Assembly: GCF_035594765.1 (NCBI RefSeq)
Contig: NW_026943819.1
Location: 17,224,703 to 17,288,702, forward strand
Direction: 5' to 3'
DNA from: Anolis carolinensis
Lineage: Eukaryota
DNA: 64,000 nucleotides
A model generated the notes under the pieces. It was not told the DNA's origin. It searched no databases and worked only from the letters and a program-made list of their open reading frames with translations. Positions within the stretch are counted from its first letter, which is position 1, and each line of letters opens with the position of its first letter. This document shows positions 3,018-64,000 of the stretch, in pieces. The translations under genes were made by a program, and so were the position numbers.

Positions 3018-6000
3018 TCAATCATTGATCCAAAAGTTGTGAAAATTACAATAGTCTTTCACACAACACACCATTATTTCTTCAAAGTCCTCCTGACTCT
3101 TCTTTGTATTACGACACACTGAAGTGCAACCTCGGTCCACCTTTACAATAGTCTTTCCTGGAACGAAGAACAAGAAAGATAAACTGTAACAGGTGAATCA
3201 GAAGCCTGCTTTTCAAAAGTCCCAGTTTTGCTTCTCCTCCCTCTTTCCCCTTTGTCTTCAGCTCATTTCGGTTCTTCAACATACAAAAGACATTTGTACG
3301 AAATTAACTCAACAGGTGGGGGAGATGTAACAAGGGTGGAATCTTTCCATTAGACTAAAACAAAGTTAAAATGCTTCAGCTTTTCCTAGCTTGTGTGTCC
3401 ATCCTCATTAATACATTTCTCCATCTTGACTACACTGTGATGCTATTTGGCCACATATGTCCCAGTTTTCATCTATCAAACATTGGAGGGTATGGGGTCC
3501 TGTGAGTTGATAGGAGAGTTTAAACCCCTTAGGTTACATGTGGCCGTTCGCTATACCTTAGGACAGCTGGAAAGACTTCGATCATGTTTCATCTTTCTTC
3601 CTGATTTATAAGATTCCTAGTAGCCTAAATAAATTGCCACTGATACTTGAGGTTGTATAGAGTAGCCAGCAGATCAAATGACATAGATAACAACTGTTGG
3701 ACCTGTGGAAGACTTAGGACAGTGATGGCCAACCTATGACACGCGTGTCAGCACTGACACACCTGGCCATTTTGGCTGACACACTGCCGTATGCAGATTG
3801 ATTGGATGACTATGTATTTTGTGGCCAAATTTGGTGTGATTTGGTCCAGTGGTTTTGTTGTTTACTCCATGGGAATTATGCACAATATATATATATATAT
3901 ATACATACAGTAGAGTTCCGGTTATTCGACATAAACGGGTGGGCAGAATGTCGAATAACTGGATCTGACGGATAATAGGGAGGCCCTATTATCCAGCAAG
4001 CCGGTTGAAGGAAGTGTCCCATGCATGTTGCTAGGTAGATAGCAAGCTACCTAGCAACGTGCAGGAGCGCTTCTGCTCAGCCTCTTGGGAGGTGCCCGTG
4101 CGCGTTGCTAGGTAGATAACAAGCTACCTAACAACGCTTAGGGGTGCTTCCTAAGCAGAGTGCTCACCCCTCCGCCCCTTGGGAAGCGTCCGTGCGCATT
4201 ACTAGGTAGCTTGCTATCTACCTAGCAACGCGCACAGGCGCCTCCCAAGGGGCAGAGCAGCGAGCATTCGGCTTAACGAAGCACCTGTGCGCGTTGCTAG
4301 GTAGCTTGCTATCTACCTAGCAACGTGCACGGGCGCTTCTCTGCTCGCCGCCCTGCCTCTTGGGAGGTGCCTGTGCGCATTGCTAGGTAGATAGCAAGCT
4401 ACCTAGCAACGTGCATGAGCGTCTGCCAAGGGGCCTGGGATGTTGGATAATACGGAATGTCGGTTAACCGGAAGTCGGTTAACCGGAACTCTACTGCATA
4501 TATATATACCGTGTTCCTCTGAAAATAAGACAGTGTCTTATATTAATTTTTGCTCCCAAAGATGCTCTAGGTCTTATTTTCAGAGGATGTCTTATTTTTC
4601 CATGAAGAAGAATTCACATTTAGTGTTGAACAAAAAAAATGAACATTTATTATATACTGTACAGTAGTTGTCATCAGAAACCAGTATAATCAGACAAACT
4701 GTGAATCCTTGTTATTACCATTATTTCCATGTACAATACTCTATGATATGTACATTCACCAATCCTGCAAGCTCTGGTGTTCTGTTTGGCAGGCATGCTT
4801 CCAAACAAAAACTTTGCTAGGTCTTACTTTTGGGGGAGGTCTTATATTTAGCAATTCAGCAAAACCTCTACTAGGTCTTATTTTCCAGGGATGTCTTATT
4901 TTCGGGGAAACAGGGTATATAATTATGTCATTCTATTACTATCTAATATTATCATATTATTACTAGTATATTATTATTATATTATTTATTATTCATAACT
5001 ACATTGAAACTAGAATAGAGAGAAATCAGTGTGGAAAGTGCACGAGGTACCATAGATTGTTGTACATGGAAATAAGGGTAGTAAATAGTTTTTGATTTAT
5101 TAAATACAGTTATATATTACAATTATATATTTTTGTTATTTAAACTATACATATTGTGAAATTATTTTTTATCTCAAAGTGACACACCACCCAAATCATG
5201 TTAGGTTTTTTTTGGTAAATTTTGACACACCAAGCGCAAAAGGTTGCCCATCATTGACTTAGGAGGATTATACAAGCTTTTGTACTGCGCATTTCACTGC
5301 AATCACAGTGAAATGCGCAGCAAAGGAAGTTTCTCTTTGCACGCTGCTAGAATGATAAGCAAGCAACCCCTGGAGATTTTCTACTCAGAAAATCATTAGA
5401 GGCATGGGAGCCCTGTCACTTCAAATCAGATAATTATAGGAAATGTTTACACAGGTTGGGCATCTTATGCTCTTCAAAAGGAACAGTTCTTTGCCGAGCT
5501 CACCTTTAGTAATCAGCCGATTGTAGCAGAAATCAAACCCTCTTGATTCACAGAGCTTCTCAGGATGTTTGCATCTATCATCTTTTGCAACAAATTTACA
5601 TACCCAGCATGAAAGTGCTCCTCCTAAAATGGAAAACATCAAGCACATGGATAGCTGCAGAGTTTCAAAAGTCTAATTGGGAAGAAACTACAGATCAGGT
5701 ATATTAGTGAGTCTGTGATTAATTAACCACTGGTATTTAATGCTTGCAACTGCTTATAGCTGGAAAAGGGGAGTTATGGTGCAATTTTACTCTTTGGTGT
5801 CCCCTGGCTGTTAATTGCTTGGGTGCTTTTGTGAGGCATTCTTACCCTCCCTGCTGAAGCTACCGTGTTTCCCCGAAAATAAGACAGTGTCTTATATTAA
5901 TTTTTGACCCCAAAGATGCTCTAGGTCTTATTTTCAGGGGATGTCTTATTTTTCCATGAAGAAGAATTCACATTTATTGTTGAACAAAAAAAATGAACAT

Positions 6001-51549: not shown

Positions 51550-53874
51550 TGTTTATATGTGGTGGCAGGTATCACAAAATGTAGCGCATGCAAGCCAAAA
51601 AGTTGGACAACCCCTAGTTTAGACACTGTTGATTGCAGATAGTGTGATTAATAGTGAAAGTAATGTTTCTAAATGTTTTAAAATGTTTTAAATTCTATTT
51701 TAATATGTTTATTTTAATTGTACATTGTTTTGAGGCATCTAGTAGTTGCCTATATGCAAAGCCACCTTGAGTCCCCTTCGGGGTTAAAAAGGCAGGGTTT
51801 AAATATAAAAATAAATAATACATACATAGCACAAATAGATTATCAGTGTTTACTACATTGTATTCATGTTCAATGACGAGCTGCTTTGAGGTTCAAATTG
51901 GTGCAATAATATTTGCACAGGTGTAATTGCTTCCAGATTTGCAAAGAGTGCACCAAAGAGTGCAACTGTAGGCACTGGTATCATCAAGCATGTATGCATC
52001 ATGTTAATAGTTGACTGATTGTTTTCTTAAAATATTATTGTGAAGATGAAGTAGCGTAATTCCTACTACTCTACCCAGGAAAATAAACTCACAAAAAGAT
52101 TGAGTGAATTGGTGCTACCCCTTTAATAAAACAACATAGTCAGATGTGCCGTGGTGGAAAGTAGCTACATCTGTCGCCTTGAGACTTCGCCTTGAAGTAT
52201 TGAGAGGTGTCATCTGGGGCCATCTCAGCCGAGTCTCAAAACCGTAGGCACTCTGACAGAGAAACCTATTAGAAGGCACAACCATCATTAATATCCCAAT
52301 GACATTTTGGCAGATAGCATGGAGAAGGTGAATAAATCTTTCATAACAAGGGCTACTCTAGCAAAAACATCCAATGATATTACAATCCCTATGTGTTCAG
52401 CTGATACATTCCAAGACCTCCCTTGGGCACCTGATACTATGCTGAACCCTATTTTATACTATAGTTGGGCTGGATAAGGGACTTCTACTAGATATCCAAT
52501 AGCAGTTGAGAACAAGATAATAGAGCTTTTGTCCAAAGTTTAAAGACGTTCATAAGGCTAGTTTGGATAGCTTCTTTAAAATTCAAACTAAAGTGCAGAG
52601 TAGATTCACCACTCCTGTTGTGACTGCGCCTTCGGGGACTATGGATGATGGTGGTGGAATTAGAAGAGGAAGGAAAAACCCTCGCGAGGAGGGCTCATTG
52701 GAGGAGTTGCGCAGGAAACGGATTAGAGAGCTCAATGGGGAATCTTCTGAGGAAGTTTCAGATGGGGAGTTTGGGGAAGAAATGGATGCTGGTGAACAGG
52801 TGGTGGCTGAGGAAGTGGGCACTGAATGGGCACAGCCACCGGAGATGTCTGGGGAATTGGGGCCTATGGATACTACTGAACCTGGGGTATCTTCAGGAGC
52901 AGATCCCACTTGGGCTGCTTGGAGAAGGGAGGATGGTTCTTTAAGTGTGCATGGGGTTGAGTGTGGGCAGGATGATTGGAACTCCGACGAGCAATTAGGC
53001 ACGCCTGATCCACGAGCTCTAGCTGTGTGGAGTTCTGATTCTGAGTAAGATCTGGGACACCTGTTGTTTGGGTGTGAGTGTTTGGACACCCAAGAGGAAG
53101 GGGAATAAATTGGGAATGTTTGGTCACTTCACTTTGCGTGTGGCAAGGTGTTGCTGAAGCGCCATTGGGATTTCTGTTCGTTCAAGAAGACTGGACTGGG
53201 ACTTTGCTTCTGATCTGCTGTTACCATCGTTGCCTTGGCTCTTTGTGCCATTTTGTGGACCTGGTTTTGATGACTGCACCCTTTTGGACCCTGGACTGTA
53301 ACTCGACCTTGCTTCTGCCTTCGCCCTTTGATGGATGACTACTCCGGTTGGCTTGCTAAAACATACTTTTGATATATATTTTTGTTTGAACTGCTTTTTA
53401 AACACTGATAGTTAAGTGTTTAAAGCTATCTTCTGTGTTTATGTTTACTTTTTGGCCTATCTCCTGAATAAACTCTGTTTTGTTTGTTAATTGGCATCTG
53501 ACTCTTGACAACTCCACTGACATTAAACTGTTTCCTTCAGGTAGAACAATATTAGTATTTCAGACTGAATAATCCAGTTGCATGAACTAGTAGACTGGAT
53601 CGGAGAAAGTGAACACACAATTATGGATCACTACCACATTTTCCCAAGATCTGTGGGACAATAGGAAGAGGGCTTGGAAATCTTAATACAGTAGAGGAGA
53701 AACAATATTAGCTTCATATTCATACCAATGCTCATTGGAAGCCATTGCAGAAACTCTGCTCATCACAGCAGAATGTAGCTATTACGTGATAACCAAGACC
53801 GAATGAAACTGATGAATCTGTGCATTCAGAAAGTGACTCGGTGCATCCGGTCCTCTGAAAATTATCCCCGTCTT
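51550..53874. repeat. Segmental duplication copy A (3' flank and last exon of gene 8)
   Basis: Colinear similarity to ~61940-64000 (e.g. 52073-52615 vs ~63112-63693; 53511-53820 vs 63689-64000), interrupted by the LTR at 52616-53510. Confidence 0.85.
52616..53510 (+). mobile_element. Solo LTR (Gypsy-like), 895 bp
   Basis: TG...CA, TSD ACTCC (52611-52615, 53511-53515); empty site present in the paralog at 63689-63693. Confidence 0.9.
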
Positions 53875-56800
53875 CTGTAGTGTGATGACTCATGGGCCAT
53901 GTAGTCCTGTTCCTAGCGCTGTTGTGACAGATGAAGAGGAAAACTTAGGTTTCCCACCGTTTCAGCCAGAATTGGAGCTTTCACAGCCAGAGATGGAGCC
54001 CCTGCACCTGCAGGAGATTTGCCTCCCAGAAGTTTCCCAAACAAGCCCTGAGCCGAAATCTCCCCCTTTTTCTCGCCGTGATTATTGTCAACAACAAAGG
54101 GGAGCTCAACAGGCTAATCGCAGAAGCCTGAGAATCGCGGCCAAACAAATGGTTGATTAAACCTGCTTCCCATGGGAATCTTTAGGGAGTCATGCATCTG
54201 GACTCAGAGAATGGCTTTCGGTTCTGGTTCCCCAGAGAATTGTTCTCTGGCGGGAAAACGAGACCCTACTTAGGTGTTTTGCCCTCGTAGGAATCTTGCG
54301 GAGTCAATTCGTCAACTACGGGAGTAGGTTGTGTGTGGACTACGCTCCCGTTTCCAGCCTTGCTTTGCTTCCCAGGACCTTGTTTTGCTTCACGGACCCA
54401 GCCTTGCCTTCCGGACCTCGCCACGAATTTATCACGGATCCTGTTTTTGCTCCTTGTTCTTTGTTGCCTTGAATTAAGCCTTGTATCCAAGAATCAAGTT
54501 ATTTCCTTGCCTTGCCTAAGTTTCATGGACTAAAGGACCTTGTCATCTCCCCTCACTTTGCTTGGCAAAGTGAGTGTTTCGGTTACTGGATTACAACTTT
54601 GGACCTTAATATTTCATATTGGACATTGTTTCCCTGGACTAATTTTGACCTTTCCTGAAAGGTCTACTTCTGAACTATTTCCTACACTTGCTTTTATTAA
54701 CTTTATATATTTCCTCAATAAAGATATTAGATAGATTCTGGCCTCTGTGTATGGTTATTGGTGCTCTGCAGCCTGGGTCGTGACATGTAGAAAAGGAGGA
54801 AAAGAAACATGTTAGTATAGCTGCATCTCTTATTAATGTCTGCCCTGAAATCCCATTTTACACCCATACTTTGAAAACAGGGTCCTTCCCTATTTTCATG
54901 AACTCAGTGTTCACAAATCATTTAGAGCAATGGTAGAAGTTAAAACAAAATTTGGCAAGGATGGGCAATAATCCAGAATTCTGGATCAATCTAATATGTC
55001 TTGGGTTGAAATGGTAACTACCATGAATTTAATACTCAGGACATACAATGAAGATCATGAAAAGGCATTAGTACTACATAACTTCAGAATATTAATAACA
55101 TGGCACAACTATACAGACAATAAGACATGTTAATAATGTCATAGAATCATAGTGTTGGGAGAGACCACATGGGCCATCTAGTCCAACTCCCTACCATGCA
55201 GGAAAAGCACAATCAAAGTACCCCTGAGAGATGGCCATCCGCCCTCTATTTAAAAAGCCTCCAAGCATGGAGGTTCCACCACACTCTGAGGCAGAGAGTT
55301 TCATTGCTGAACAGCTCTTACTGTCAGGAAGTTCTTCTTAATGTTCAGGTGGAATCTCCTTTCCTGTAATTTGAACCCATTGCTCCGAATCTTAGTCATA
55401 AAAACTTTAAATATGATCAGTACTGGGCCCAGAACCAAATCCTGTAGCACTCTACTGGTCGCTTTTTCCAGGATGAAGAGGGACCACTGGTGAGCACCTT
55501 TTGGGTTTGGTCACATTACATATCCACCTGATAGTAGCATTGGCTATCCTATATTTGACAAATTCATTTGCAAGAAGGTCATGGGGAACCTTGTCAAAGG
55601 CCTTGCTGAAATCAAGATATTCTACATTCACAGCATTGCCTGCATCTACCAAGCTTGTAACTCTATCGAAAAAAGATATTAGTCCGGCATGACTTGTTCT
55701 TGAGAAATCCATGTTGACTTTTAGTAACTGTTTTGTCATGCTAAGAGTTAATATGTAACTGCACCATCAAGTCCCCAAAGTCACTTGGAATTTAACATAC
55801 TTGGGTTAATAGTCACAGACAGGCATTTTTGTCCTGGTGCAGCTATACAAGCTGACTTTTCTGTCAGACACTTAGCTGTGACGGGATCAAATCTTTTGCA
55901 GACCAAGCAGCGAAGCTGACTCGGAGCTGGAAAGGGAAAGAGCATAATGCAGAAAGTATTAGATTTAAAACCAAATATGATCTGGCATTTCCACTTTTTT
56001 TAATCAGAGGTTCTCTGTCTTTGAAATTTTCACATGGATATGACATATTACCTTTAGTATCAGAAAAAGCACAGCTCTCTCTGAGTGCCGTCTAGACATT
56101 TATATGAATCTGTTAACAACAATATGTACTGTTTATAGTAGACTCTGCAGAAAATGCTTCAGCTGTACTCCATAAAAAAGGAAAATGAGCCTGTTTTGCA
56201 AGTCTTGCAAATGCTGATTTTTTTTATCAGTAAATGTTTTATTTGTTATCTATTTTATATATTTTGTATCTAAGGCATCAGACTTTAGAAACCACTTTTC
56301 CTGGGGTTGTTTGCACTCAACACCCTTTCACTGAAGCTGAGTGAAGGCACCTTTTTAAAACACTTATTTCAGAGCATGAAGCATGAAGGAGTATTAGCCA
56401 TTTTTAAAAAAAGATATAAATTACCTCCTTGGTTCTAAAGATTATGGAGGAAGAAAGGATTCTATGCCTTCCATCTCAGCTTCTCCCCCTTAATTACGTC
56501 ATCGTTTATTTACAAATAGGCAAAGGAGGAGTCTCATCATATGTTAAACTAGCTGTGCCCGGCCATGCGTTGCTGTGGCGAAGAATGGTGGTATGGGAAA
56601 TAAAGTATTGAGGAATTGGTGGTAGTTAAGGTCAAGGGTAAAGGTTTCCCCTGACGTTAAGTCCAGTCATGTCTGATTCTGGGGGTTGGTGCTCATCTCC
56701 ATTTCTAAGCCGAAGAGCCGGCGTTGTCTGTAGACTCTTCCAAGGTCATGTGGCATGACTGCATGGAGCGGCGTTACCTTCCCGCCGGAGCAGTACCTAT

Positions 56801-57460
56801 TGATGCACTCACATTTACATGTTTTTGAACTTCTGGGTTGGTAGAAGCTGGGGCTAACAGTGGGGGCTCTCTCCGCTCCCCCAATTCAAACCTGCGGCCT
56901 TTCGGTCCAGAAGTTCAGCAGCTCAGCGCTTTAACATGCTGCGCCATCAGGGGATATTATTTCCTAAAGGTTGTGAATATACAATATTTCTGATTGTTGT
57001 TTTTTTTGTCTGTTGGAGGCAAGTATGAATGCTGCAATTAGGAAAAATGATTAGGATGTAATGGCCTTGCAGCTTTAAAGCCTGGCAGTTTCTTCTGAGT
57101 GATTTTTTTGTTGGGAGGTGTTAGCTGGCCCTGATTCTTTCCTGTCTGGAATTCCCTTGTTTTCAGAGTGGTGTTGTTTGCGATATTTTATATGCTTCTA
57201 CTGTCTGTGGCCCTGAGAAAACAGAGGATTGGCCAGACTTTGATGATGGGAATACTTTGTTGGGAGGTGTTAGCTGGCCCTGATTGTTTTCTGTGTGGAA
57301 TTCCCCTATTTTCAGAGTGTTGTTCTTTATTTAGTGTTCTGATTTTAGAGATTGTATTGTTCTGTTTTATTATACCACATTAATTTTTATATATTCTGAT
57401 TTTAGTGTTTTTGAATACTTGGAGCCAGATTGTATTCATTTTCACGGTTGACCGCAACAC

Positions 57461-57506
<46 letters not shown>

Positions 57507-60292
57507 GTAATGATAGTAATAATAATGACTTTGGTAATACATAGTGCTTCACTGCCTTCTCAGCTTCCTTTCTGGAAGAATCCTTTCTTGGGAGGTGTTA
57601 GCTGGCCCTGATTGTTTCCTTTGTGGAATTTCCAATTTCCTTGCTTTATTTACTTTCTTTATTTCTTTATTTACTGTCCTGGTTTTAGAGATTATATTGT
57701 TCTGCATTATTCTATCCTAGAAATTATTTCATATCAAAGTAGAATCTCACTTATCCAACATTCGCTTATACAATGTTCTGGATTATCCAACGCAGTCTGC
57801 CTTTTCATAATCAATGTTTTTGTAGTCAGTGTTTTAAATTCATTGTGATATTTTACTGGTAAATTTGTAAATACAGTACAGTAAAGTCTTACTTATCCAA
57901 CATAAGTGGGCTGGCAAAATGTTGGATAAGCGAATATGTTGGATAATAAGGAGGCGTTAAGGAAAAGCCTATTAAATATCAAATTAGGTTATGATTTTAC
58001 AAATGAAACACCAAAACATCATGTTAGACAACAAATTTGGCAGAAAAAGTAGTTCAATACGCAGTAATGCTATGTATTAATTACTGTATTTATTAATTTA
58101 GCACCAAAATATCACGATATATTGAAAACATTGACTACAAAAATGCGTTGGATAATCCAGAACGTTGGATAAGCGAGTGTTGGATAAGTGAGACTCTACT
58201 GTAATTACTACATAGCATTACTGCGCGTGGAACTACCTTTTCTGTCAAATTTGTTGTATAATATGATGTTTTGGTGCTTAATTTGTATAATGATTACCTA
58301 ATTTGATGTTTAATCAGCTTTTCCTGAATCCCTTCTTATTATCCAATATATTTACTTATCCTGCTGGCCTGTTTATGTTGGATAAGTGAGAGTCTACTGT
58401 ATATTGATAATCTTAAATTATCTGCTTAGAACTGGATTATATGAGGCCTCTTCTTCACAGCTGTATAAAATGCACACTGAAGTGGATTATATGGCAGTGT
58501 GGAGTCAAGATAATCCAGTGCAAAGCAGATAATATAAGATTCTAAATGGGTTATATAGCTGTGTGGAAGGGCCTTGAGTCTACACTGCCATATAATCCAG
58601 TTAAAATCTGATAATCTGTGGAAGAGGCCTAAGTGAGGCCTAAATTTGCCTGTCCCCTAACTGAAACCTGGCTGTCCCTTGGTTGCTAGGCAACCATGTG
58701 GGCAGAGATTAGCCCTCTAAAGTGGCAGCAATTGGATAAAAACAATTATTGCTCTCCCTCTAATTAGGACTTTATTTTTCTTTTCTTTTTGTTGTATCAA
58801 CCCTGAGGCATGTGTGATGGGTTGTGTTGTCAAATTTCGAGGTTGGGGGGCCTGTAGTTTTGTTGCTTTGTCCGCTGCCCTGATGCCATCACTCTTTTAT
58901 ATATATAGATTGGGCATTTTAAACGTCTCTATGCGGAGAATTGAAAAATAAGTCACTTGCCAATAAATTCAGAAATTATGGGAAATGTCAGAGTAATTTG
59001 CAGCGCAGCAGTAATTGGATGGAATCAGTGGAACACAGAATGAAGAGACATCAGAGACGTTGGTAAAACTATATACAAAGTTTTACTGACTTCAGTAATA
59101 ATCAAGACAAACAGACTTGCAGACAATGGACACAGGACTTGACTTCTCAGCAGACAGCAGAACAGAACTGAACTGATGCAATCAGTAATGCACACACACT
59201 TGTGTCTGGACACTCCCCAGTTCCAGCCACACATCAAGGTCAACACAGCTTCTTAGTAATTAACTCTTTCCAGACTATAGTACACTCTGGATGATGCAAT
59301 CAGTATGCAAAGCAGGCAAGACACAAATTTCATTTAAACACTACCAATACACAAATCCCACATTAACAGGAAAATCCCAAACTTTAGAAAAGGCAAGATA
59401 CCTCTACCTCACATTTGAATCTTACGCCATGAGAAGGGCACCATCTGTGGCAGTTTCCTAAGTGTATGGAAACATGTACTCCATTGTGTGTGATAAAGTC
59501 ATAGGTTGCTCTTTTAAAGGCAAAACAGTAGCAGATGAGTTACTGTTTCTTCTTGCAAAAATACATTGGTATTTCAGACTAGAGGTTGATGATGATCATG
59601 AGGTTGATGATCATGAAAATGATGATAAATTACTCACCTACCTCCGTCACTATGGAAGAAAATGATGAAAAACACAACATTAGTTAAAAGTGCATATAAA
59701 AGCAATATATATTAAAATCCATCAATAAATATTTGACTACTTGAAACAAATGTAAAGAAAGTGGAATGATTTGATATTGACTTGTTATGGTCATTTCTAA
59801 ATGCATTAGTAACAAATCTCATTTCCATGCTTTTAACAAACTGAAGCTGCCAAATAGTGCAGTGATGCCTCAGTGTACTGCACAATCAAACTGCAAGAAC
59901 TGGGAGGCTAGATGTGAGAAAGTAAAAAAAATGGAATTTTACTAGATCCTGCAATACCATGTTTGGAATTTCCTTTGTCACTAGAAGGGACTTGGGGTCA
60001 TTTTGAGGAAAATCCTATTTAATATAAAATTTTGCCAGAATTTATTTTGACTCTTGGAGAGTTCCAGACAGCTGAATCAACCCTGGCAATCAATGGAGTG
60101 ACAGATGTCACAGCCAGTTCACCCTCACATCGTAGATTGCAGTTCAATTCCTATCCCCATACTATTGGAGTTCTTGAAAAGATTAACCTTTTCTCTCACA
60201 AACATTTCTCATCTCTTTCACCATATTTGCTAGGACTCACTGAGGACCATGCAGAGAAAAATGGAGATAGTGGAAGCCAGCATCTTATTCAT
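53732..60292 (-). CDS. Gene 8: Ly6/uPAR PATE-like protein, possibly disrupted; core exons 60292-60241, 55926-55801, 53874-53732; candidate micro-exons 59649-59638, 59457-59426, 56434-56425
   Basis: MNKMLASTISIFLCMVL-[MTEVGNCHRWCPSHGNQGA]-PSQLRCLVCKRFDPVTAKCLTEKSACIAAPGQKCLSVTINPKDGDNFQRTGCTESLSECTDSSVSFGLGYHVIATFCCDEQSFCNGFQ*. The ORF is intact but the last acceptor is split by a solo LTR. Confidence 0.8.
53881..54785 (+). mobile_element. Solo LTR (Gypsy-like), 905 bp, inside the gene 8 splice acceptor
   Basis: TG...CA, TSD TGTAG (53876-53880, 54786-54790), AATAAA near 54717. Confidence 0.9.
55137..55722 (-). mobile_element. CR1 fragments
   Basis: LISFFDRVTSLVDAGNAV..YLDFSKAFDKVPHD plus CR1 3' tail. 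Confidence 0.8.
56549..58909 (-). mobile_element. Composite Helitron (2.36 kb) carrying a Sauria SINE, nested MITEs and Harbinger-like pieces
   Basis: Same TC.../...CTAG termini as the short Helitrons; AT insertion site. Confidence 0.75.
58986..59368 (-). mobile_element. Solo LTR, same family as 28612-29006
   Basis: TG...CA, TSD GGAAA. Confidence 0.85.
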
Positions 60293-61154
60293 CTTTGGTT
60301 GATCCAGAAGAGAAACAAAGTCATGGAAGGATGTAAGTGGAGAGAGGAGATGGTGCAGTGAGCTCTGTTCCTCATCACTTTAAGGATTAAGTCAGAAGGA
60401 AATAGGAAGTCAGCCCCGAAGAACAGTGCATATCGATTCTTAGGTGACATTATCAACAAATAACAATCAAGAAATAGAGTGTCCTGTGACCATTTGGAAG
60501 ATTCAACTGAATGGTCAGCACAATGTGCTTTAATGAACAACACAGAGATTGGAATTATCTGAAGAAGGAAATGGGCAAATAACAAAAATGTAAGACTGAG
60601 ACCACTCATGGCATGGTTATCAGTTGTGACATGAAAGAAGGAAATCAATAATTGTGTATTTAATAGTTCAGAACAGGGTTTCTTCTTGCAATACAGTATA
60701 TGCAGAAGATATTTGGAACTAATTGTTCACAACAGGATTTCTTCTAACACTAGAGAATATGCAGCAGATATTTGGGACTAGGGATCTCATCACATGGAAG
60801 TTTTCCTCCATTTTCCCTCTGTGTTCGCACATTGGCAAAACCGAATTCAATGGAGGCCATGATGGGAGACCATGGGGAAAGACGGGTCTCCACTCTTCCT
60901 AATCTATTCACTGATTTCCTCTCACCTTTTTGATGAAGTCCCAAATCCAATGCTATGTTCACTGTGGAGAGGTGTGGGTTGGGGAGCGGCAACCACTGCT
61001 TTGGTGCAATTCTATAAATGTCTCCATCTGTGTTAGGAAATACCGCTCAGCCTCACGTCAATACAAGGCAAGAATCTGGAGCAGATTGTTAAGGGAGCAA
61101 TCTGTAATCAATTAGAATGCAATGCTGTGATACTTAAAGTCAATATGAATTTCT

Positions 61155-61937
61155 CAAAAACAATGCCAGACTAATCTTATCTCTTTTTTCGCTAGAGTTA
61201 AAAGATGGGTAGATGCAGGGAATGCTGTGGATGTGGTGTATCTGGATTTCAGTAAGGCCTTCAACAAGGTTCCCCATGATTTCCTGGTAAACAAATGAGT
61301 CAAATGTGGGCTAGGCAGAACCACAGTTCACTGGATCTGTAACTGGTTAAGCAAACACATCCATAGGATGCTCACCAATACTTCCACTTCATCCTGGAAA
61401 GAAGTGTCTAGTGGAGTGTCAAAGGGCCCGGTCCTGGTCCTGGTTCTATTCAACATCTTTATTAATGACAAAGATGAAGGGTTAGAAGGCACGATCATCA
61501 AGTTTGCAGACAACACCAAATTGGGAGGGATAGGGAATATTCCAGAAGACAGGAGCAGAATTCAAAACGATCCTAACAGGTTAGAGAGATGGGCCAAAAC
61601 TAACAAAATGAAGTTCAACAGGGACAACTGCAAAATACTCCACTTAGGCAGAACAAATGAAATGCAAAGATACAGAATGAGGGACGCCTGGCTCAACAGC
61701 TCTACGTGTGAAAAAGATCTTGGATTCCTCATGGGGAGGAAGGTGAACATGAGCCAACAATGTGATGTGTCAGCTGAAAAAACCAGTGAGATTTTGGCCT
61801 GCATAAACAGAAATATAGCATCAGAAGCTAGATAATCATTTGTCGGGGGTGCTTTAAATGAGATTTTCCTGCTTCTTGGCAGGCGGTTGGACTGGATAGC
61901 CTACGAGATAGCTCTTCCAACTCTTAGATTCTATGAT
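61155..61937 (+). mobile_element. Degenerate CR1 RT fragment with 3' tail
   Basis: SSWKEVSSGV..FADNTKLGG..MSQQCD; stops upstream; tail ttctatgat. Confidence 0.85.
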
Positions 61938-61939
61938 AA

Positions 61940-64000
61940 TATATGTGGTGGCACAATATTATCACAAAAATAATGCATGGACTTCTTTCCTGCCCATGAG
62001 CTACCATCCGTGTTGGTGTATTTTATGTGTGGCCAAAGATAATTCTTCTTCCGATGTGGCCCATGAAAGCCAAAAAGTTGGACACCCCCTGGTTTAGACA
62101 TTTTTTATAAATATATTGGATTTACTACATTGAATTCATGTTTATTGATGAGCTGCTTTGAGTGCCACCGTACGGCTGCATCTGGCTCCTGGTAGCTGTT
62201 CCGAGGGTTTTGGCATCTCTAATCTGTCCTTTCCATGGAGGAAAACAAAGGGCAGAAATGTTTCTCCTGGAAGGAGCCACAAGCATCAATCTACCTTTTG
62301 AACAGGTTACAAGGCCTCTCTGCATTGCTCAAAATCAAAGGAGGACAATTTCTGGCACCTTAAGTTGATTTCTTGCTACTTTGTGTTTGTTTACTACTTC
62401 AGCCCTCAAACCCGCCACAGTGCTCTAGAAATAGGTTCAAATTGGTGAGATAGTATTTGCACAAGTGAAATTGCTCCCAGGTTTGGAATGAGTGCAACAC
62501 AACTGGAAGCACTGTTGCCATCAAACATGCATGCATCGTGCTATTAGTTGACTGATTGTTTTCTTAAAATGTTATTGTGAAGATGAAGCTGCTGAATTCG
62601 TAATTCTAAAATGTTAAAGAAAGTGTGATGAAATAATGATTCTTGAGAAGATCAGGCATATCATACCTAGGCTCCTCCTTCTTATGTTTATTTCTACCCC
62701 TCTTTTCTCTCCAGAAAGGAGACTGAAAGTGGCTAATAAAGTCATCTAAGAAACTCATGCAGACTATATTCCTTAAAATAGGGTTTCTGACTATTAATCA
62801 CAAGAATCTGAGAAACGTTGTGCACCATCTACACATCTATTTTCATAAGGTTTAGGCAACTCATTGCAGCTTGGTAGCTGGTCGCAGATCTGATTTGTCA
62901 TAGTATTTGTTGATAACCTTATGAATTGCTGATGGGCATCTTGTGGCGTTTGGTATGTGCTGAGATTCAAAGAATTCAGTTTCCTCACAAACATTTCAAA
63001 CAACCATTCTAAAAATTATGTCCAGATTTAAAATCAAAATCACGAAATTTCAATGATGTTTAGGTCAGAGGGTTTTTAATATTTCATTTGGATCTCACTG
63101 TCAATATACTGTACCCAGGAAAATAAACTCACAAAAAGATTGAGTGAATTGTTGCCACCTCTTTATTGAAACAACATAGTCAGATGTGCAGTGGTGGAAA
63201 GAATGGTGGTAGCTACATCTGTAGCCTTGAGACTTCGCCTTGAAGTATTGAGAGGTGTCATCCGGGGCCATCTCAGCTGAGCCTCAAAACTCCAGGCACT
63301 CTGACGGAGCAACCTATTAGAAGGCACAACCATCTTCAATATCCCAATAACATTTTGGCAGTTAGCATGGAGAAGGCGAATAAATCATTTATACCAAGAG
63401 ATACTGTAGCAAAAAAAGTTGTTGTTTTTTTTAAAAAAAAAAAAGCATCCAAGGATAGTACAATCCCTATGCGTTCAGTTCATACATTCCAAGACCTCCC
63501 TTAGGCACCTGATACTATGGTGAACCTTATTTTATGCTATCGTTGGGCTAGATAAGGGACTTATCCCAATAACAGTTGAGAAAAAAGGTAAAGATGTTTA
63601 AAGATGTTCATAAGTCAATGAGCCTACTTTTTAGGAGTCAGTAATTTGGATAACTTCTTTAAAATTCGAAGTGCAGAGTAGATTCACTACTCCACTGACA
63701 GCAAACTGTTTCCCTCAGGTAGAACAATATTAGTATTTCAGACTGAATAATCCAGTTGCATGAACTGGTAGGCTGGACAGGAGAAAGTGAATACACAATC
63801 ATGGATCACTACCACCTTTCCCCAAGGTGTGGGTGACAATGGGAAAAGGGCTTGGAAATCTTAATACAGTAGGGGAGAAACAATATTAACTTCATATTCA
63901 TACCAGTGCTCATCGGATGCCATTGCATAAACTCCGCTCATCGCAGCAGAATCTAGCTACTATGTGATAAGGAAGACCGAATTTAGTTAAAAATTCACTT
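61940..64000. repeat. Segmental duplication copy B (3' flank and last exon of gene 9)
   Basis: Paralogous to 51550-53874. Holds the empty LTR site (ACTCC 63689-63693) and has extra blocks at ~62162-62430 and ~62605-63110. Confidence 0.85.
63910..64000 (-). CDS. Gene 9 (partial): 3' part of last exon of a PATE-like paralog of gene 8; continues beyond window
   Basis: ...SEFLTKFGLPYHIVARFCCDERSLCNGIR*. Aligns codon-for-codon with the gene 8 last exon, and the downstream flank is ~90% identical by eye. Confidence 0.85.
   Translation of the reverse strand, partial: SEFLTKFGLPYHIVARFCCDERSLCNGIR

Follow-up and report, generated by a model that had tools for sequence, protein, structure and literature searches.

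The window analysed here, a 64,000-nt stretch of the green anole genome (Anolis carolinensis, GCA_035594765.1), contains between positions 3018 and 64000 nine tandem three-exon genes of the Ly6/uPAR (LU, three-finger) superfamily: eight are complete, and one (gene I) is cut by the window end (Table 1). A six-frame scan of the window for CC-x3-6-C[ND] returned nine last exons plus one chance match; a scan for C-x2-C-x-C-x-C returned eight second exons pairing with the last exons, and 52-nt ATG...GT exons coding for hydrophobic peptides were found upstream of seven genes. No further orphan Ly6 exons were detected by tblastn within the window. The motif scans and the spliced models thus bear out the cluster of eight complete genes and one partial gene proposed in the initial annotation.

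Table 1. Gene models of the three-finger array (positions within the window)
Feature	Position	Strand	Model
Gene A	3018..7306	-	103 aa; exons 7255-7306, 5504-5623, 3018-3157
Gene B	12891..15312	-	101 aa; exons 15261-15312, 13432-13554, 12891-13021
Gene C	16153..21938	+	exon 2 18473-18607, exon 3 21772-21938; signal exon uncertain
Gene C, candidate signal exon	16153-16246	+	94 nt, phase 1, family-like MNK... start; no GT at the 52-nt position
Gene D	23458..27803	+	111 aa; exons 23458-23509, 26816-26935, 27640-27803
Gene E	30618..36014	+	102 aa; exons 30618-30669, 34146-34265, 35878-36014
Gene F	40046..43608	+	104 aa; exons 40046-40097, 42389-42508, 43466-43608
Gene G	45407..48535	-	104 aa; exons 48484-48535, 46609-46728, 45592-45734; 3' UTR to about 45407
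Gene H	53732..60292	-	106 aa, simplest model; exons 60241-60292, 55801-55926, 53732-53874
Gene I	63910..64000	-	exon 3 end only: 29 codons and stop 63910-63912; duplicate of H

The genes share a single design. Splice sites are canonical throughout, with AG acceptors and GTAAGT, GTGAGT, GTACGT or GTATGT donors. Because exon 1 measures 52 nt (3x17+1) and exon 2 measures 120, 123, 126 or 135 nt, introns 1 and 2 are both in phase 1. The mature part of all eight complete genes carries ten cysteines in a pattern that ends with CC-x4-5-CN, and gene I retains the terminal part of this pattern; in genes A, D, E and F the spacing is exactly C-x2-C-x8-C-x6-C-x7-C-x17-C-x3-C-x15-CC-x4-CN, as had been claimed for these four genes. 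Signal peptides begin MN, MS or ME, and the mature chains (81-93 aa) have a C-terminal xHNxW tail. Since just 4-18 polar residues follow the last cysteine, there is no hydrophobic GPI signal. Both the 52-nt signal exon in seven of the eight complete genes and the combination of phase-1 introns, ten cysteines and no GPI tail in all eight, features first read from the sequence, are reproduced by the exon models and spliced models. The products are accordingly predicted to be secreted, GPI-less three-finger proteins with five disulfides and a signal peptide encoded in exon 1.

Six of the nine models (A, B, D, E, F and G) coincide with NCBI/RefSeq genes and have the same exons (the comparison covered genes A-G): the cluster is therefore not "hidden", as it had been called, and the gene models themselves are not new. 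Genes A, B and E match public proteins letter for letter (XP_062817482.1 (P0004), "three-finger toxin W-V-like"; XP_062817543.1 (P0011), "muscarinic toxin 7-like"; and XP_062817443.1 (P0014), "acrosomal protein SP-10", respectively). Gene D equals the 140-aa public protein P0001 ("toxin 3FTx-Lei1-like") minus 29 N-terminal residues that derive from an upstream ATG, while genes F and G agree in coordinates and length with public calls of 104 aa each. Gene C is absent from the called genes at the locus. The description "poorly annotated" holds for the naming, which is poor (snake toxin-like labels), but not for the genes, most of which had been called: the toxin-like RefSeq names are automatic best-hit labels.

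Transcripts reproduce two of the predicted junctions. In the one RNA-like public run (X20) a spliced contig joins 42505/8 to 43463/6 with GT..AG ends, which is intron 2 of gene F to the base; another joins 45734 to 46609 with CT..AC ends (GT..AG on the minus strand), which is intron 2 of gene G to the base. Unique coverage in X20 is confined to exons, and the RNA of both genes continues past the stop codon into an uninterrupted 3' UTR; the gene G contig extends to 45407, next to an AATAAA beginning 184 nt past the stop. In the gene F contig, exon 2 is preceded by at least 9 nt of intron 1 sequence, and part of the gene F RNA may therefore be incompletely spliced. Coverage in runs X22-X24 lies on repeats only, and these were rejected as transcript sources. 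Of the predicted junctions proposed for checking in the initial annotation, intron 2 of F and of G is thus borne out by this run; neither RNA nor a public model was found for gene H.

Comparison with A. sagrei shows how the array evolves. The order E-F-G, exon lengths, splice sites and all cysteines are kept. Gene E has orthologous exons in A. sagrei (L008) with dN/dS 0.57; the signal peptide of gene F shows no non-synonymous change relative to its orthologue (P0008), while its mature part has dN/dS 1.13; and exon 3 of gene G has dN/dS 0.93 (5-18 synonymous changes stand behind each of these values). Mature peptides are thus fast-evolving (dN/dS 0.6-1.1) and the signal peptide is conserved. 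Within the window, the duplicates H and I differ with dN 0.32 and dS 0.12, and their identity is 77% in coding sequence and 80% in the 3' flank.

A dN/dS near 1 would also be expected if the array were partly decaying, with gene C and perhaps H or I as pseudogenes and the high ratios reflecting relaxed constraint. Gene C is uncalled publicly and has no clean 52-nt signal exon (none was found by nucleotide similarity), and the exon-3 acceptor of gene H (at 53875) is poor, with a weak pyrimidine tract, beside an insertion. Nevertheless all eight complete reading frames are open with all ten cysteines (that of H is in frame with no extra exons), the conservation of gene structure in A. sagrei and the unchanged signal peptide of F argue for constraint, and spliced transcripts exist for F and G. 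We regard decay as unlikely, though of the alternatives to functional genes of the type proposed below it is the one that survives best.

Membership of the superfamily is evident from profiles and fold. Genes A, B and D score above the Pfam cut-offs for both UPAR_LY6 (24.8) and Toxin_TOLIP (21.2), with gene A reaching 29.3 and 30.8 bits, respectively; gene E passes for Toxin_TOLIP, and exon 2 of gene G alone gives 25.5 bits against UPAR_LY6. The exon halves correspond to the two halves of the Pfam domain; exon-wise matches of genes C and H are weak or lacking. An AF2 model of gene A adopts the three-finger fold (pLDDT 85 overall, about 92 in the domain), and its Foldseek matches are GPIHBP1, MT7, PSCA, irditoxin and uPAR. 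A profile search of the PDB gave superfamily matches with E-values of 5e-7 to 1e-2: PSCA was the best, followed among others by snake toxins (1e-5 to 1e-3), SLURP1 (1e-4) and Lynx1 (1e-2). G and H/I share no more than 18-33% identity with other array members; G- and H-type exons gave no PDB match, and the Podarcis, Phrynocephalus and Mauremys loci compared contained nothing that clearly corresponds to them. Gene C groups with the Podarcis "SP-10-like" protein P0018 (94/91).

Homologue searches delimit the family. A phmmer search against 1.84 billion representatives returned 24 clusters only, all squamate or turtle except for one spurious ENA fragment; sequence similarity is too low for mammals to come within reach of this search. 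Word-index searches with an exon-3 ORF, a complete public protein and a family profile of 18 sequences likewise recovered no mammalian PATE; all their matches were the query itself or close squamate proteins. A tandem set does exist in squamates, as the proposed "squamate expansion" implies, but turtles also have one, and the family is hence not restricted to squamates. RefSeq names relatives "PATE14-like", "PATE3-like" and "SP-10". Two window proteins have PATE3, PATE14-like and PATE4-like as their nearest ESM Atlas clusters (0.90-0.93), with TM 0.76-0.81 to PATE3; clusters of snake three-finger toxins (3FTx) stand at 0.86.

A further line of evidence concerns chromosomal position. In mammals the ACRV1/PATE cluster lies downstream of CHEK1, in an ACRV1-PATE-HYLS1-PUS3-DDX25 block. 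In Podarcis lilfordi the family cluster begins 3 kb downstream of a kinase gene with exons similar to human Chk1 (2e-18 and 5e-14). In Phrynocephalus forsythii it begins 6.4 kb downstream of a gene for a kinase of 476 aa, 82-92% identical to Podarcis CHEK1. The Phrynocephalus cluster is at 17.33 Mb of a 29.8-Mb chromosome; the corresponding figures for Anolis are 17.22-17.29 Mb of 30.9 Mb. Nothing was found within 10 kb past the far end of the Podarcis cluster, nor around Phrynocephalus P0003. Of the neighbours predicted for a PATE locus, CHEK1 adjoins the family in two squamates; no gene, CHEK1 included, lies within 7 kb of the left end of the Anolis window, and none of the flanks examined, in any species, showed HYLS1, PUS3 or DDX25.

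The nearest known system is the mammalian PATE cluster with ACRV1 (human 11q24.2, PATE1-4; mouse chromosome 9, Pate1-14). Mammalian PATE genes consist of three exons, the first of which encodes the signal peptide (PMC4839075); like them, the array consists of tandem three-exon genes whose products are secreted single-LU-domain proteins with ten cysteines and no GPI anchor, and copy number varies among lineages. The array family of Podarcis and Phrynocephalus shares with the PATE cluster its place beside CHEK1, and PATE clusters are the closest language-model and structural neighbours of the array proteins. One-to-one orthology with a mammalian PATE emerged for none of the array genes. On the basis of position in relatives and of language-model and structure neighbours – leads only – the array genes are quite probably homologues of the PATE locus: the PATE label given at the outset is supported by CHEK1-adjacent relatives, Atlas neighbours and RefSeq names of relatives, but not proven. 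The window is likely to be part of a CHEK1-linked ACRV1/PATE-type cluster in the green anole that counts at least nine small genes.

If the array proteins act as mammalian PATE proteins do, they would be soluble ligands secreted in the male reproductive tract by epithelia of the epididymis or renal sexual segment. Their targets would be sperm or receptors, nicotinic acetylcholine receptors (nAChRs) for example, and their diversification would proceed under post-copulatory selection. A function in the reproductive tract is suggested by this analogy, and we hold it with somewhat less than even confidence. More tentative still is a broader proposal: that squamates and turtles possess an old, independently expanding counterpart of the PATE cluster, in which signal peptide and disulfide scaffold stay fixed and the mature peptides change at the neutral rate or faster, and which may constitute a seminal, epididymal or renal-sexual-segment system under post-copulatory selection, undescribed and mislabelled as snake-toxin-like. 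No paper on a squamate PATE cluster was found in the literature.

Secreted three-finger proteins also serve other ends. The array could encode modulators of epithelial, neural or immune function in general – cholinergic regulators of the SLURP/Lynx kind or innate-immunity factors – with no tie to reproduction. PATE proteins are also reported from neuron-rich tissue and act on nAChRs (PMC4839075), the PDB matches include SLURP1, Lynx1 and PSCA, and immune genes would fit the high dN/dS equally. However, SLURP and Lynx genes lie in the TOP1MT/8q24-type cluster (PMC10421932) and not by CHEK1. Together with the weaker profile similarity of SLURP1 and Lynx1, this makes a role of that kind improbable.

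The tandem expansion, the conserved signal peptide with its fast-evolving mature peptide and the soluble three-finger design would suit chemosignals or courtship pheromones secreted by exocrine glands such as those of the skin or cloaca. A precedent is the plethodontid modulating factor found in salamanders, reportedly a three-finger pheromone. Anoles, however, mostly use visual signals. Positional homology and nearest neighbours favour PATE, and the mammalian sites of PATE are epididymis, prostate and seminal vesicle (PMC4839075); we judge a pheromone array to be quite improbable.

Least credible – very improbable, in our estimate – are toxin-like oral-gland proteins related to snake 3FTx, a reading invited by the toxin names of genes A, B and D, the Toxin_TOLIP and weak Toxin_cobra-type matches, the snake toxins among the PDB profile matches and the shared secreted, GPI-less state, but opposed by a 3FTx locus that is TOP1MT-linked, as is the LY6 ancestor (Koludarov et al. 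2023, PMC10421932), as against CHEK1 beside the array family in two squamates, by Toxin_cobra-type scores below cut-off, by Atlas similarity lower than that to PATE, and by a best PDB match (PSCA) that is not a toxin. Judged by the locus of their squamate relatives, array genes are not orthologues of snake 3FTx. Both, along with the LY6 ancestors of 3FTx, are squamate three-finger proteins that are secreted, lack a GPI anchor, come in tandem arrays and evolve fast in the mature peptide; array chains are longer and carry the xHNxW tail, and their signal peptides lack the MK(T) start of 3FTx and pre-3FTx. SLURP1/SLURP2, PSCA and GPIHBP1 (the 8q24-type Ly6 cluster) provide the best solved-structure matches by profile and fold, and the SLURPs are also secreted; these genes nonetheless belong to another locus, the matches are weak and generic to the superfamily, and PSCA and GPIHBP1 are GPI-anchored.

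If the positional homology with the PATE cluster is true, the origin of the PATE/ACRV1 cluster is no younger than the amniote ancestor, and mice, lizards and turtles have each had an expansion of their own; the array would then offer a non-mammalian system for the diversification of secreted three-finger reproductive proteins. In lizard annotations, labels such as "three-finger toxin-like" and "muscarinic toxin-like" are artefacts of best-hit naming, which bears on toxin-gene surveys in non-venomous squamates. The "SP-10" name of gene E also departs from its mammalian namesake: ACRV1 has 4-5 exons (PMC4839075) and a long N-terminal region before the LU domain, whereas gene E encodes a plain 102-aa protein in three exons.

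Nine last exons carrying the C-terminal Ly6 signature, plus one chance match, were found by six-frame scan of the whole window, which contains no runs of N. Eight second exons with the pattern C-x2-C-x8/9-C-x6/7-C pair with these last exons, and seven genes begin with a 52-nt ATG exon that codes for a hydrophobic peptide of 17 residues and is followed by a GT[AG]AGT donor. Joined by coordinates, the exons give ORFs of 101–111 residues with canonical splice acceptors and donors and, in most genes, a poly(A) signal no more than 250 nt past the stop. With 52 nt in exon 1 and 120–135 nt in exon 2, both introns are phase 1; each mature part holds 10 Cys, and the 4–18 residues past the last Cys are polar: a GPI signal is thus absent. 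The initial annotation, which proposed eight genes and one partial, a 52-nt signal exon in seven, phase-1 introns, 10 Cys and GPI-less C-termini, is borne out on each point, and the spacing C-x2-C-x8-C-x6-C-x7-C-x17-C-x3-C-x15-CC-x4-CN is matched exactly by A, D, E and F. Gene I is truncated at the window end after 29 codons; tblastn with all models found no additional Ly6 exons in the window.

Last exons of the nine tandem three-finger genes, in order along the window
Feature	Position	Strand	Basis
last-exon signature, gene A	~3045	-	six-frame scan
last-exon signature, gene B	~12915	-	six-frame scan
last-exon signature, gene C	~21858	+	six-frame scan
last-exon signature, gene D	~27729	+	six-frame scan
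last-exon signature, gene E	~35967	+	six-frame scan
last-exon signature, gene F	~43555	+	six-frame scan
last-exon signature, gene G	~45610	-	six-frame scan
last-exon signature, gene H	~53744	-	six-frame scan
last-exon signature, gene I	~63922	-	six-frame scan

The likely signal exon of C (16153-16246) has a family-like MNK... start but lacks a GT after nucleotide 52; use of the phase-1 donor that comes next (16247) would place an Arg-rich stretch (five R in succession) ahead of the domain. The sole in-phase acceptor for H exon 3 (53874-53875) is preceded by a poor pyrimidine tract and borders a stretch described earlier as a solo LTR (53874-54817). Despite this poor acceptor H still reads as a simple three-exon gene, its frame open throughout.

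Runs strongly covering 40–48.6 kb are all DNA-like; unique coverage in the RNA-like public run X20 (sample tissue coded) is restricted to exons. Splicing at the predicted junctions is confirmed for intron 2 of F and of G: a 339-nt X20 contig joins 42505/8 to 43463/6 (GT..AG), exactly F intron 2, and a second, of 407 nt, connects 45734 with 46609 (CT..AC, minus strand), exactly G intron 2, extending to 45407 beside an AATAAA that starts 184 nt past the stop. Because both contigs pass the stop into contiguous 3′ UTR, neither gene has a downstream exon supplying a GPI tail, in line with the proposal of GPI-less proteins. The F contig does not stop at the exon-2 acceptor: it carries 9 nt or more from the end of intron 1, plus 50 nt further (window 42330-42389), and no in-frame ATG occurs in the frame so extended. 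The RNA may be incompletely spliced, with intron 1 retained, or may have an alternative 5′ end. High-copy repeats at 42738-43104 (F intron 2), 44520-45335 (between F and G) and 47265-47390 (G intron 1) reach depths of hundreds to tens of thousands in the four runs compared, and account for the apparent 5% coverage of the 40–48.6 kb stretch by runs X22–X24.

The cluster is not hidden, as had been supposed: it is annotated under inconsistent best-hit names. The window corresponds to ~17.2247–17.2887 Mb of contig JAWQEF010000008.1 (30.9 Mb; GCA_035594765.1). Models A, B and E are identical in every letter to XP_062817482 ('three-finger toxin W-V-like', P0004), XP_062817543 ('muscarinic toxin 7-like', P0011) and XP_062817443 ('acrosomal protein SP-10', P0014); the coordinates of F and G each coincide exactly with a called 104-aa gene; and a stop-free ORF across D exon 3 matches a 140-aa NCBI A. 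carolinensis protein encoded on the same contig ('toxin 3FTx-Lei1-like', P0001). The suggestion of poor annotation therefore holds for the naming and not for the genes themselves, which are largely annotated; C is missing from the called genes of three overlapping public loci and has no public protein entry. For D, the RefSeq model (P0001) uses an upstream ATG, which places 29 non-hydrophobic residues ahead of a family-type signal peptide (window 23371-23457). An internal Met at 23458 yields the 52-nt exon common to the paralogues, and the N-terminus of the public model is probably too long. In other squamates, several public models (Podarcis lilfordi loci L003 and L004; proteins P0002, P0005, P0016) merge two or three adjacent three-finger genes into one multi-domain protein of 247–289 aa, and are probably annotation run-ons over tandem copies.

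Exon 2 peptides align to Pfam UPAR_LY6 positions 2-36, exon 3 peptides to Toxin_TOLIP positions 39-72 or UPAR_LY6 positions 47-81, and the full public proteins exceed curated Pfam cut-offs. In the 18-sequence family alignment the ten Cys and an RGC before Cys6 are invariant, with a terminal CN; an xHNxW tail is common. From this alignment AlphaFold2 predicts A to be all-beta past the signal helix (mean pLDDT 85). The top Foldseek matches (GPIHBP1, muscarinic toxin 7, PSCA, irditoxin, uPAR) and the best PDB matches of the family profile (PSCA, 5e-7; then GPIHBP1, snake toxins, SLURP1) are generic superfamily matches. The window proteins are shown to be small soluble three-finger ligands of the secretory pathway. 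A phmmer search with the mature part recovered only 24 clusters among 1.84 billion representatives.

The anole paralogues are mutually 18–59% identical. An ML tree of the mature domains of eight anole genes with 15 relatives from public data (omitting P0002, P0003, P0005 and P0016, which are fused multi-domain models, and P0023, which is spurious) places A–F in a squamate group (support 97/99), with G and H outside it on long branches. Among its pairs are F and the A. sagrei orthologue of F (99/99), A and D (93/77), and C and a Podarcis 'SP-10-like' gene (94/91), making C an old paralogue. Turtles have a separate tandem set (108, 108, 95 and 100 aa within 21 kb).

Position, nearest neighbours and names support the PATE-like label. 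CHEK1 flanks the ACRV1–PATE cluster of human and mouse. In P. lilfordi, family members are numbered consecutively (CAI5795553-571), and a kinase gene whose exons match human Chk1 (2e-18, kinase domain; 5e-14, KA1 domain) has the first of them 3 kb downstream; in Phrynocephalus forsythii the family member P0021 is found 6.4 kb downstream of the gene for a 476-aa kinase whose C-terminal exons are 82–92% identical to Podarcis CHEK1. The Phrynocephalus gene maps to 17.33 Mb on a chromosome of 29.8 Mb, near the anole coordinates. CHEK1 was not seen beside the anole window in a search to 7 kb past its left end, nor HYLS1, PUS3 or DDX25 in any species' loci examined. The nearest ESM Atlas clusters for both A and E are PATE3, PATE14-like and PATE4-like (0.90–0.93; 188–207 shared features), against 0.86 for snake-toxin clusters, and the best structural match of each is the PATE3 cluster (TM 0.76 and 0.81): these are leads rather than tests. 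RefSeq names relatives 'PATE14-like' (Sceloporus, Rhineura), 'PATE3-like' (Heteronotia) and 'SP-10' or 'SP-10-like' (Podarcis, Paroedura, turtles). Literature searches turned up no account of a PATE-type cluster in squamates or other sauropsids; the gene models are already public and the kind of protein is known.

ACRV1 and the PATE genes are clustered at human 11q24.2 and mouse chromosome 9 A4 (PMC4839075). To judge by positional homology and by the known behaviour of PATE proteins (PMC4839075), the window proteins would be secreted by male-tract epithelia, might associate with sperm or modulate receptors (nAChRs, for instance), and might diversify under post-copulatory selection; that all three hold together seems possible rather than probable. 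Less probably, the proteins may be chemosignals, or general cholinergic or immune modulators. A toxin-like role in oral glands is harder to sustain, and snake-toxin orthology was rejected, since 3FTx and their LY6 ancestor belong to a TOP1MT-linked cluster (Koludarov et al. 2023, PMC10421932), whereas in two squamates the window family lies beside CHEK1.

A further rival reading is partial pseudogenisation of the array. In A. sagrei the E-F-G order is preserved, as are the splice sites, every Cys and the length of each exon. By Nei-Gojobori, on small counts, the F signal peptide shows 0 non-synonymous and 3 synonymous changes between the two anoles and the F mature part dN 0.121 and dS 0.108; dN/dS is 0.57 for the E mature part and 0.93 for G exon 3, and the duplicates H and I differ by dN 0.32 and dS 0.12 (29 codons). 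On these counts the signal peptide and disulfide scaffold appear frozen and the loops fast-changing, as is typical of secreted ligands of the reproductive, toxin or pheromone kind; this pattern counts against simple decay.

Retrotransposon remnants lie on the plus strand at 8289-9611, between A and B (an ORF of 440 aa in which RVT_1, the reverse-transcriptase domain, scores 127.6 bits), and at 61368-61835, between H exon 1 and gene I (a weaker RT fragment).
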